A stretch of 63,387 nucleotides of DNA, filler included, from Ministeria vibrans ATCC 50519 (Eukaryota > Protista > Filasterea): NCBI GenBank assembly GCA_943704425.1. It is 9 parts of 9 records of this genome, joined end to end, with 100 filler letters (N's around TTAATTAATTAA, not from the genome) between each part and the next. Parts side by side here need not be neighbours in the genome. Positions count along the whole stretch, not along the records: positions 20,126 to 32,005 come from CALSCP010002136.1; 8 more parts are not named here. One strand, given 5' to 3'. Both the position numbers and the translations under genes were made by a program. Positions 26,814-28,864 of the stretch are shown here, one piece after another (the stretch's first letter is position 1; each line of letters opens with the position of its first letter). The notes beneath the pieces are model-generated. The model made no database searches and had not been told where the DNA came from. It worked only from the letters and a program-made list of their open reading frames with translations.

Positions 26814-27773
26814 TTAGACTTCCGTCTCTTCACCATAACGCGCAGAGCGTAGAGCCTGTCCTAGAGCACCTTGTCCCTTGTTGCCTGATGTGACGGTCAC
26901 CAGTTGGTATCGTCCACTCATGGTCGGATCTGACTGCAAGACCGCCTCCAAGGAGTCACGAAATATTTCAACTTGCTCACGAATGTTGAGCTCAGGCAGG
27001 TCCTTTTTCATGATGTTAATCGTGCGAATTGGCGTGGCAAACTCCGCAATATAGTATTCCTCGTTGTGCTCGTAGACATTATTCTGATAGAATCTGTCCT
27101 TGATACCACTACGGGTAATTTGCAAGGGCGCCATCTTGCAAAAGTGCTTCAAACCTTGGCGCTCAAGAGTTGGGAGGTCGGGGCTCGCTTCGCCGTCAAG
27201 TGGAATTATAATGTAGAGTTTTGGAGCCACGGGTTTGCCCTCCAGATCCGGTGTATCCGCAAGCTTGTCCTCGAAGTTCGGCGGCGACAGCACGTCCTGG
27301 AGGTAGCCAGCATAAAACGACCAGGCGAGTCCGAAGGCAACCTCTGACCCAAGACGATCGTTCTTGCGAGGGATAGAAAACCGTTCAGCGTCTGTAATGG
27401 GAAAGATAGTAGTCACCACCACTGCAGACGCAACGCTGATGACCACCTGAGATAAATCCAGAGACAGTCGTGTGATGAACACGACAAAGGCGACAAGTGA
27501 GCACACGAGAATTCCCCAATCCAGAGTCGTTTTTGGCCAAAGAGACCAGGCGATGCTACGGAGAGCCCTGAAGGTGCGATAACGCGCGAAGTCCACAACA
27601 ATGATGGCTATGTAGAAGCCGAGGCGCGTCACGAGAACGCCCGAGAGTGCATTTCCAAGCGTTGAAAGGTGTTCATCTCGCCCTGGTGACAGCGCCCACC
27701 CAAACGTGGCCACGATGGACATAAAGAGCACGACTATGTGGTAGTAGAACGAGTGCCGAATGATTGCTGCCAT
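26814..27773 (-). CDS. STING1: STING, animal-type: 4-TM domain plus cyclic-dinucleotide-binding domain, no C-terminal tail; intronless (alternative ATG at 27857)
   Basis: EVAFGLAWSFYAGYL (human NVAHGLAWSYYIGYL), KLYIIIPLDG (RLYILLPLDC), TRSGIKDRFYQNNVYE (RAGIKDRVYSNSIYE), AEFATPIRTI (LEYATPLQTL), REQVEIFRDSLEAVL (LEQAKLFCRTLEDIL). Four N-terminal hydrophobic segments. Confidence 0.95.
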   Translation of the reverse strand: MAAIIRHSFYYHIVVLFMSIVATFGWALSPGRDEHLSTLGNALSGVLVTRLGFYIAIIVVDFARYRTFRALRSIAWSLWPKTTLDWGILVCSLVAFVVFITRLSLDLSQVVISVASAVVVTTIFPITDAERFSIPRKNDRLGSEVAFGLAWSFYAGYLQDVLSPPNFEDKLADTPDLEGKPVAPKLYIIIPLDGEASPDLPTLERQGLKHFCKMAPLQITRSGIKDRFYQNNVYEHNEEYYIAEFATPIRTINIMKKDLPELNIREQVEIFRDSLEAVLQSDPTMSGRYQLVTVTSGNKGQGALGQALRSARYGEETEV

Positions 27774-27931
27774 CCTTGCTTTTGTGTTGCGACGTTTTGC
27801 GACGAAAAATAAGCGAGAACTGGAACAAGAAAAATAAGCGAGAATTTGATCAGTCATCAGAAAGGATCATCAGAGTGATGAGTGATCAAACACAATTTTT
27901 CGGCAAGAAACTGACATCATTCGCAACCAAC

Positions 27932-28864
27932 ATGCCTACAATTGCTGAACTGGAGCGCACTGTGGCGCAGAATGCCGAGGAGCGCAAGAAGAGAGTCGCT
28001 GCTGTGCACAAACTCATCGACCAAGTCGACGGCTGGACTCCGCTCCCGCAGGGCAGCTACTACGAGGGCTTGGCTGTGGCGAGGCGCTCTGACTTTGACT
28101 TCCTCTTTACGAAGAAAGCACAGTCGTATGGTTCTGGGACCCTAAACCGCGACTTAAACTCGCCCTTTGTCCGTTGGGACGCTGCTACCTCGGACTCCAA
28201 ATGGTTCTATGATGAGTTCGACGCTGCCACGCTTCGTCTTGACGGGGTTAAGTCACGTGCTGGGCCAGCAGTGTGTGCCGAACGGAGAGTCAATGACTCT
28301 GTCGTCTCTGTCGACCTCGTCCCTGGATGGGAGTGGCCATACCAGCAATGGCAAAATTTTCTCGTGTCGCAGGCGACTATCCGCCTCATCTATCCCGACA
28401 TTGCCTCCTTCCCCATTCACGTCGTGCCTAAGCTGCACGATGGTGAGTGGCGCTGGCGTCTGTCCTTCTCGCAGATTGAGAAGGGTATCAGCAAGCACGC
28501 CGACGACCCAGACACTTGGCGCAAGATGTGTCTTCGCATCACGAAGGATCGCATGGACACAACCCTCCGGCGCACCGACATCCCGCTCAAGACTTATCAT
28601 CTCAAGACGTGCTGGTACCACTTCATCGTCACGCACCCGGGCCGCGACTACTGGCGAGCGAGGACTGAGCTGGAGAAGAAGGCGCTTCTCAACGACTTCA
28701 TCAACTTCTGCAAGGAGCGCTGCAACTCCGAAATCCGGCATTTCTTCTTGCCGGACTACAGTCTCACGACAGACTGGACGCCGAGCGATCGCGACACCAT
28801 CACCATGGCTTTCAATGCCGTTCTGCGCGAGTTTCAAATCAGTAAAGACCAATTGAACGTTTAA
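27932..28864 (+). CDS. cGAS-like receptor (cGLR, Mab-21 family nucleotidyltransferase), about 310 aa, intronless (alternative ATG at 27878)
   Basis: QGSYYEGLAVARRSDFDFLF (GS loop and DxD; cGAS GSYYEHVKISAPNEFDVMF), SVDLVP (third Asp), HVVPK, WRLSFSQIEKGI (cGAS WRLSFSHIEKEI), RKMCLRITK, KTYHLKTCWYH, IRHFFLPDYSL. The start was chosen because the adjacent paralogue also begins MPTIA. Confidence 0.93.
   Translation: MPTIAELERTVAQNAEERKKRVAAVHKLIDQVDGWTPLPQGSYYEGLAVARRSDFDFLFTKKAQSYGSGTLNRDLNSPFVRWDAATSDSKWFYDEFDAATLRLDGVKSRAGPAVCAERRVNDSVVSVDLVPGWEWPYQQWQNFLVSQATIRLIYPDIASFPIHVVPKLHDGEWRWRLSFSQIEKGISKHADDPDTWRKMCLRITKDRMDTTLRRTDIPLKTYHLKTCWYHFIVTHPGRDYWRARTELEKKALLNDFINFCKERCNSEIRHFFLPDYSLTTDWTPSDRDTITMAFNAVLREFQISKDQLNV

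Follow-up and report, generated by a model that had tools for sequence, protein, structure and literature searches.

A divergent cGAS-like receptor and STING gene pair beside a telomere: a probable two-gene immune module of a marine eukaryote

The subject of this analysis is a pair of neighbouring genes, one encoding a STING protein and the other a cGAS-like receptor (cGLR), that lies in a 63,387-nucleotide stretch of DNA (the window, in whose positions all window coordinates are given). The piece analysed covers positions 20126–32005 and comprises 11,880 bases with a GC content of 54.5% and a single gap of seven N's at 26135–26141. The STING open reading frame (ORF) occupies 26814–27857 on the minus strand and contains an internal ATG at 27773; from this preferred start the coding sequence runs over 26814–27773 (minus strand), as assigned from the ORF together with its match to the Pfam STING_LBD model. 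The cGLR lies on the plus strand in an open frame (27764–28864) that contains ATGs at 27878 and at 27932, and its coding sequence of 310 residues (27932–28864, plus strand) is assigned from Pfam and PDB matches and from alignment. Between the two preferred ATGs, as given by the ORF starts, is a divergent intergenic region of 158 bp (27774–27931, without strand). An earlier sequence-only reading had described two intact, intronless genes of the STING and cGLR families diverging from a spacer of 158 bp, or of 20 bp if the upstream ATGs at 27857 and 27878 are used. A fresh reading of the sequence finds both ORFs intact and both spacer figures exact (27773 to 27932 for the longer); Pfam, PDB and alignment matches agree on the family of each protein, and the motifs that had been named are found in the two proteins, as WRLSFS, GLAWSFY and GIKDRFY.

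The STING ORF (347 residues) matches Pfam PF15009 (STING_LBD) over residues 172–327 with E 3.3e-26 and 92.2 bits against a cut-off of 27, and 75 STING chains in the PDB match it as well, the best being Nematostella STING (5cfp, E 2.7e-16). Four hydrophobic N-terminal helices (6–27, 33–62, 83–103 and 107–123) are predicted in the AlphaFold2 (AF2) model, where the predicted local distance difference test score (pLDDT) is 50–76; the Pfam STING_TM model has no match on this ORF. The model as a whole, made with a 34-sequence alignment, has a mean pLDDT of 78.5, rising to 83–97 in blocks over residues 141–310, and its top Foldseek matches are STING ligand-binding domains (TMt 0.76–0.84). The stem (GLAWSFYAGYL), the lid (RSGIKDRFY) and the next helix (EFATPIRT) align column for column with animal STINGs, and because they do so every human 2'3'-cGAMP contact has a counterpart: S152, Y157, R221, R227, Y229, E244, T247 and T251 align with the human contact set of S162, Y167, R232, R238, Y240, E260, T263 and T267. 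Judged from sequence, the pocket is predicted to be fully animal-type and to match the set that contacts 2'3'-cGAMP. The C-terminus lies about 20 residues beyond the ligand-binding domain; a signalling tail like that of vertebrates is thus lacking.

A full HMMER search of 1.84 billion representative sequences returned 127 relatives of the window STING, the best of which is 33% identical when two near-identical metagenome copy fragments are excluded. Nearly every named match that was examined is an animal STING, from octocoral, tick, geckos, acorn worm, sea anemones, insects or fish; one comes from the apusomonad Manchomonas. In a tree of 100 ligand-binding domains the nearest neighbour of the window STING includes Manchomonas, but with 28% identity and on long branches. 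The sole match of a word-based homologue search with STING was a near-identical metagenome fragment.

The cGLR matches the Pfam Mab-21_C model (PF20266/PF03281 family) with E 4.5e-7 and 30.4 bits, above the cut-off of 24.1. Its PDB matches are led by cGAS chains (E 3.5e-7) and by insect and oyster cGLR1 chains (E 3.7e-6), the others being weaker Mab-21 proteins, among them MAB21L1, which is far weaker (E 0.013); 28 of its 30 nearest Atlas clusters are Mab-21. The closest relatives in a large protein collection are cGAS and cGAS-like proteins of a hemichordate and of vertebrates at 22–32% identity, and a word-based homologue search gave nothing at E 1e-3 and cGAS and Mab-21 proteins alone at E 10. 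An alignment of eight cGAS and cGAS-like proteins has invariant columns at G41, S42, Y44, E45, D56, D128, K167 and W175–S180 (WRLSFS), and further at E183, K184, K205, Y222, H223, K225 and T226 (YHxKT, 222–226); D54, in the sequence D54-F-D56, aligns with the first catalytic glutamate of cGAS. Since the GS motif, D56 and D128 are invariant and D54 stands at the position of that glutamate, the active site is complete, and the protein is identified from these residues as a predicted enzyme of the Mab-21/cGAS family with a GS motif (G41–S42) and a D54/D56/D128 catalytic triad. The zinc thumb is absent, as shown by a gap at the KTCCE...CC of cGAS (alignment columns 455–478); this thumb is a feature of vertebrate cGAS, and its absence is normal in invertebrate and choanoflagellate cGLRs.

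Both genes are transcribed. The piece or part of it is contained in 19 public runs. DNA runs from two studies of organism A contain 99–100% of the sampled words of the piece, RNA is observed in two further studies, and several putative RNA runs contain 68–78% of the words, which is about the share of the piece taken by the two genes. Four runs were aligned to the piece, and two of them, X6 (organism B) and X10 (organism A), give contigs on the genes: 26759–27840 (X10) and 26786–27809 (X6) on the minus strand for STING, and 27922–28873 (X6) and 27973–28850 (X10) on the plus strand for the cGLR, each with 0 differences and 0 gaps. This colinearity agrees with the claim that both genes are intronless, and the separate contigs for each gene agree with the divergent layout and the short shared upstream region that had been proposed. 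The X6 cGLR contig continues past 28873 with a non-templated tail of 21 A, its loose end being AAAAAAAAAAAAAAAAAAAAA; because the genome has GGCGGC after 28873, the run of A is a real poly(A) tail, and the cGLR 3' untranslated region (UTR) measures 5–9 nt. An AGTAAA hexamer at 28841–28846 (plus strand), located inside the cGLR coding end and 23–27 nt before the poly(A) site, is likely the polyadenylation signal. The flanks are nearly uncovered in these RNA-like runs, which together with the poly(A) tail indicates that the runs are RNA and that the two genes are transcribed on separate intronless mRNAs.

In the observed transcripts the first AUG is that at 27773 for STING and that at 27932 for the cGLR; the plus strand lacks a CAT within 27774–27840, so that 27773 is the first AUG of the longest STING contig. 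The stretch that no RNA contig covers extends over 27841–27921 (81 bp) when the runs are combined and over 27810–27921 (112 bp) in X6 alone, and the intergenic region may act as a bidirectional promoter. Within it, and within the STING 5' leader, a tandem pair of a 24-nt motif with the core GAAAAATAAGCGAGAA lies at 27804–27852 (plus strand) and is a candidate cis-element; where 0.13 matches would be expected the motif has 3, of which the third lies at 24955–24970 and contains 2 mismatches.

The adjacency of the genes is seen in two independent assemblies, and the near-complete word content of the DNA runs from two studies speaks for it as well. A 3,075-bp metagenome contig from ENA, L001, is colinear with window positions 28553 to 26814 and carries the whole of STING together with the spacer and a portion of the cGLR; because this independent contig spans the junction, the adjacency is not an assembly chimera. 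L001 differs from the window by 30 substitutions and 8 indels. All 6 of its coding indels break the frame (one of them inserts a telomere-like GGTTAGGGTT into the cGLR). Of its coding substitutions 18 are non-synonymous, among them cGLR G41S and STING E244K, and 7 are synonymous. With these indels and substitutions L001 is a dead copy of both genes. Its changes look like decay, of which the intact window copies show no sign, and one copy of the 24-nt motif is left in it. The STING stop codon is the exact end of the homology with the window. Beyond it L001 has a gene of 355 residues with a metallo-beta-lactamase fold (HxDxDH-type motif; Pfam Lactamase_B, E 8e-5), to which nothing in the window piece corresponds. 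The unit is thus found in two different contexts, in one alive and in the other dead. These observations fit the proposal that the genes moved as a unit: the pair is kept on a second contig and the flank differs directly after the STING stop, as a moved or duplicated unit would. Two substitutions, T>C at 28360 and A>G at 28557, occur in runs of organisms C and D, and that at 28360 is common to L001; the shared change hints at several strains or close species that carry the unit.

The same head-to-head layout occurs on a further contig. L006 (ENA ERZ25039529, contig_3486) is a 10.2-kb metagenomic eukaryote contig with a GC content of 43% that contains two intron-containing Mab-21 genes and a STING gene; its exons were searched singly. 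One Mab-21 gene, cGLR-b, ends at 7032 on the minus strand and STING starts at about 7340 on the plus strand, head to head and about 300 bp apart. Within 4930–8588 of this contig the two Mab-21 genes stand tail to tail and STING stands head to head with one of them; in the L006 STING about 170 residues precede the membrane helices as an N-terminal extension. In the tree this STING and that of the window fall in one and the same region, which is weakly supported. Among the nearest STINGs, P0067 (that of L006) alone is positive for a Mab-21 neighbour; P0010, P0004, P0145, P0046, P0074 and P0019 showed none where their DNA was available. No relatives were found when JGI metagenome contigs were scanned with each of the two proteins and IMG/VR viral contigs with the STING alignment, and NCBI and EukProt gave no protein match to the pair. 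A JGI contig, L004, encodes at 100–1362 a protein of 420 residues with two tandem STING ligand-binding domains and no membrane helices, to which a protein of 396 residues (P0097) is related.

The pair is subtelomeric. A perfect (TTAGGG)n telomeric repeat occupies 31897–32005 (plus strand) and runs to the contig end with its G-rich strand pointing outwards, and since the contig terminates in this repeat the genes lie about 3–5 kb from a telomere. Downstream of the cGLR, at 29051–29430 (plus strand), tblastn detects a truncated and frameshifted tandem copy of it, a pseudogene remnant of about residues 1–125 with 41% identity (E 1.6e-25), in-frame stops and a stretch of 96 nt that is 84% identical; RNA-like contigs of low depth match this remnant at 29073–29407. 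An ORF of 433 residues follows at 30310–31611 (plus strand). Its language-model features give 0.96 to TNP-like_GBD Atlas clusters, but with a recognition value of 1833 that is below the mark of 2300, and it has no Pfam match even at E 10; a P-element/THAP9-like transposase remnant is offered here as a lead only. A weak RNA-like contig lies within this ORF at 31198–31375. At the other end of the piece is a LINE-type non-LTR (long terminal repeat) retrotransposon (20127–22241, minus strand), cut by the contig edge, which consists of an ORF1-like protein (20985–22241) with a CX2CX9HX4C (CCHC-type) motif and the start of ORF2 (20127–20949) with an AP-endonuclease domain (Pfam Exo_endo_phos, E 4.8e-6). 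The segment at about 26142–26325, which adjoins the 7-N gap, is matched by several diverged, well-covered RNA-like contigs that continue into unlike sequence at both ends, and one contig skips a 64-nt GT..AG intron at 26242–26305, 500 bp from the STING gene; the segment probably represents an exon from a gene or element that is present in several copies. No tRNA or Rfam matches were found in the piece, and Pfam gave nothing at E 10 for four other long flanking ORFs.

These surroundings raise the alternative that the pair is a recently acquired mobile cassette, brought in by a virus, a transposon or transfer from an animal, and not an old module inherited vertically. Both genes are intronless although a spliced intron lies so close to STING, transposon-like ORFs stand on both sides of the pair, the GC content is 44–58% in a 5-kb island around it as against about 60% in the transposon-like flanks, the similarity to L001 breaks off precisely at the stop codon of STING, and both proteins are closest to animal ones. 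However, a search of the piece for repeats found no terminal repeats or target-site duplications bracketing the pair, on which ground a mobile-element boundary around it was rejected. The scans of viral and JGI contigs gave no relative, an identity of about 30% to every known sequence argues against a recent donor, and the high GC of the flanks may be the transposons' own composition. Recent acquisition is accordingly considered improbable.

A second alternative is that the two genes are neighbours and no signalling pair, brought together by subtelomeric shuffling, the cGLR being a Mab-21 protein with some other role or with a product that this STING does not read. The locus is indeed a subtelomeric patchwork of transposon remains and a pseudogene; certain Mab-21 proteins, such as MAB21L1, are not known as enzymes; and some choanoflagellate STINGs function without a cGLR and bind bacterial 3'3'-c-di-GMP (bioRxiv 10.1101/2025.09.04.674280). 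Against this, the linkage recurs in Monosiga brevicollis, in Salpingoeca macrocollata, in L006 and in L001, and chance is no explanation for such recurrence. The catalytic triad and the nucleotide-contact motifs are intact, the match to MAB21L1 is far weaker than that to cGAS, and the STING pocket appears to match the animal set that contacts 2'3'-cGAMP. Mere neighbourhood is for these reasons rated as quite unlikely.

The nature of the host bears on a third alternative, namely that the contig belongs to an animal, either an early-branching marine one or a contaminant, in which an ordinary metazoan cGLR and an ordinary metazoan STING are neighbours by chance. All named best matches are animal: octocoral, tick, reptiles, hemichordate and sea anemones for STING, and hemichordate and vertebrates for cGAS. 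The stem GLAWSFY and the lid RSGIKDRFY are canonical animal forms, unlike the stem ASAQSIW of S. macrocollata STING (SmSTING), and TTAGGG telomeres, LINEs and P-like elements are all common in animals. However, the window STING reaches 24–33% identity at most to any animal STING and falls in no supported clade, and several properties of the locus are unusual for animals: a GC content of 54.5% (60% in the flanks), intronless genes, a 3' UTR of 5–9 nt and 81–112 bp between transcripts. The near-identical contig comes from a seawater-type metagenome, and several seawater-labelled runs contain part of the piece; the DNA is present at 99–100% of words in two separate studies of organism A, with RNA in two more, and none of this organism's proteins appears in NCBI, UniRef or EukProt. 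An animal source is thus unlikely, if somewhat less so than the two alternatives above. Polyadenylated mRNAs, a GT–AG intron, TTAGGG telomeres, a LINE, a GC content of 54.5% and matches in seawater together fit a unicellular relative of animals best; an early-branching animal, such as a sponge, or another protist, such as an apusomonad, is a less likely host.

Taken together, the locus is probably a functional immune module of two genes that signals by a cyclic dinucleotide in a marine eukaryote, most likely a unicellular relative of animals whose proteins have not been sampled. The mechanism proposed is as follows. The cGLR, either on activation or constitutively as in choanoflagellates, would make a cyclic dinucleotide, most likely 2'3'-cGAMP; the neighbouring STING, a membrane protein with four helices, would bind it in dimeric form and set off a cell-autonomous response, the two proteins themselves not being expected to touch. 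This response may, to judge from M. brevicollis, be autophagy or cell death, an output that is proposed because the window STING has no interferon-type C-terminal tail. The two genes are read in opposite directions into separate mRNAs, probably both polyadenylated, out of an upstream region common to them, and the unit sits in a transposon-rich subtelomere in which it would duplicate, move and decay.

Several observations weigh against this interpretation of the locus as a working module. In the tree the window STING is on a long branch and in no supported clade. On the side of the enzyme, the Mab-21 nucleotidyltransferase (NTase) domain scores just below its cut-off (E 1.3e-4, 22.5 bits against 24.1) with the second half alone covered, the protein is about 30 residues shorter than cGAS between the catalytic strands, and its AF2 model has a mean pLDDT of 51 and a predicted TM score (pTM) of 0.51. 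The top Foldseek matches of that model are all cGAS (TMq 0.57–0.66, root-mean-square deviation 8–10), a match that is weak and, because the input alignment consists of cGAS relatives, partly circular. With regard to a shared promoter, contig ends are not equal to transcription start sites and co-expression in the same runs does not amount to co-regulation; the cGLR–STING pair of M. brevicollis is described as independently regulated (Li et al., bioRxiv 10.1101/2025.09.04.674280). Finally, the pair is decaying in a close relative, that of L001, and so may be dispensable.

The origin of animal cGAS–STING immunity from the bacterial CBASS systems is an active question, and the key evidence so far is the side-by-side genes of two choanoflagellates. 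To these the window locus adds a third lineage with linkage, and L006 a fourth. The window STING is much closer to the animal consensus than is the crystallised SmSTING, and is a useful intermediate for dating the dimer stem and the phosphate-reading arginine. The module turns over, as is typical of fast-evolving immune loci; this is evident from the tandem pseudogene and from the dead copy that a wild relative carries. More tentatively, and with the balance tilting against it, the host may belong to none of the choanoflagellates sampled so far but to some other unicellular holozoan, to an apusomonad-like relative of opisthokonts or to a very early animal, in which STING already has the full animal-type stem and 2'3'-cGAMP pocket. 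If this were true, the linked divergent cGLR–STING cassette would be older or more mobile than the choanoflagellate–animal stem, and would exist in nature as a subtelomeric presence/absence (live/dead) polymorphism.

Close to the present system are the choanoflagellate pairs. The novelty implied by the sequence-only reading had been overtaken by a preprint of September 2025, which describes neighbouring genes for a cGLR and a STING in unicellular animal relatives, together with biochemistry and a crystal structure. In M. brevicollis the cGLR lies 178 bp from MbSTING in an arrangement given as 'antisense head-to-tail' (Li, Toyoda, Fernandez, Tiwari, McNairy, Woznica and Kranzusch; bioRxiv 10.1101/2025.09.04.674280). 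According to the same preprint, Salpingoeca macrocollata has an adjacent pair too, both enzymes are constitutively active in vitro with 2'3'-cGAMP as product, and SmSTING binds 2'3'-cGAMP, the structure having been solved; the authors term the arrangement operon-like and link it to CBASS. Linkage of this kind is thus already known from two choanoflagellates, and the window locus is a further, differently arranged example and not the first. What is new is the head-to-head, intronless and subtelomeric arrangement, the mRNA ends, the occurrence of live and dead copies, and what appears to be a fully animal-type STING pocket in an unsampled lineage.

With the choanoflagellate pairs the window locus shares a Mab-21-type cGLR beside a four-helix transmembrane STING at a distance of less than 200 bp (178 bp in M. 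brevicollis and 158 bp here), a complete [E/D]h[E/D]...[E/D] triad, the lack of a zinc thumb and of a vertebrate C-terminal tail, and separate transcription. It is set apart from them by motifs and by description: the triad is D54/D56/D128 where that of Mb-cGLR1 is E62/D64/D142, the stem is GLAWSFY where that of SmSTING is ASAQSIW, the genes are head to head where those of M. brevicollis are 'antisense head-to-tail', and, unlike the choanoflagellate pairs, this one is subtelomeric and accompanied by a tandem cGLR pseudogene. Identity of the locus with that of M. brevicollis was rejected on account of E62/D64/D142, the 178-bp gap and the lack of any protein match in NCBI, and identity with that of S. 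macrocollata on account of the stem ASAQSIW. Among the choanoflagellate species sampled by Richter et al. (2018), a TMEM173-type STING occurs in M. brevicollis and S. macrocollata only, which eliminates the others of that sample; as the locus belongs to neither of the two, the host lies outside the sample.

The comparison with bacterial CBASS, which had been drawn from the sequence, holds only by analogy. As in, for example, the TIR-STING system of Sphingobacterium faecium, a CD-NTase is encoded beside a STING-domain receptor that reads its cyclic dinucleotide, and this is the logic suggested for the window pair. The comparison fails in that the window enzyme is of the Mab-21/cGLR type and not SMODS, that its STING fits the eukaryotic model PF15009, and that the genes are divergent and monocistronic, with one seen polyadenylated, so that there is no operon; nor are there Cap accessory genes. 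L006 resembles the window in having a Mab-21 gene head to head with STING, and differs from it in its two intron-bearing cGLRs, its GC content of 43%, the long N-terminal extension of its STING and proteins that are about 25% identical to those of the window. From the animal cGAS/cGLR–STING pathway (human, Nematostella, Drosophila, oyster) the window pair differs in several respects: the human genes are on different chromosomes, the window cGLR has neither a zinc thumb nor a long basic N-terminus, the window STING has no TBK1/IRF3 tail, and identities are 20–33%. The two proteins share with this pathway the protein families, the STING stem and lid and, as predicted from alignment, the ligand contacts, and their best sequence and fold matches are animal.

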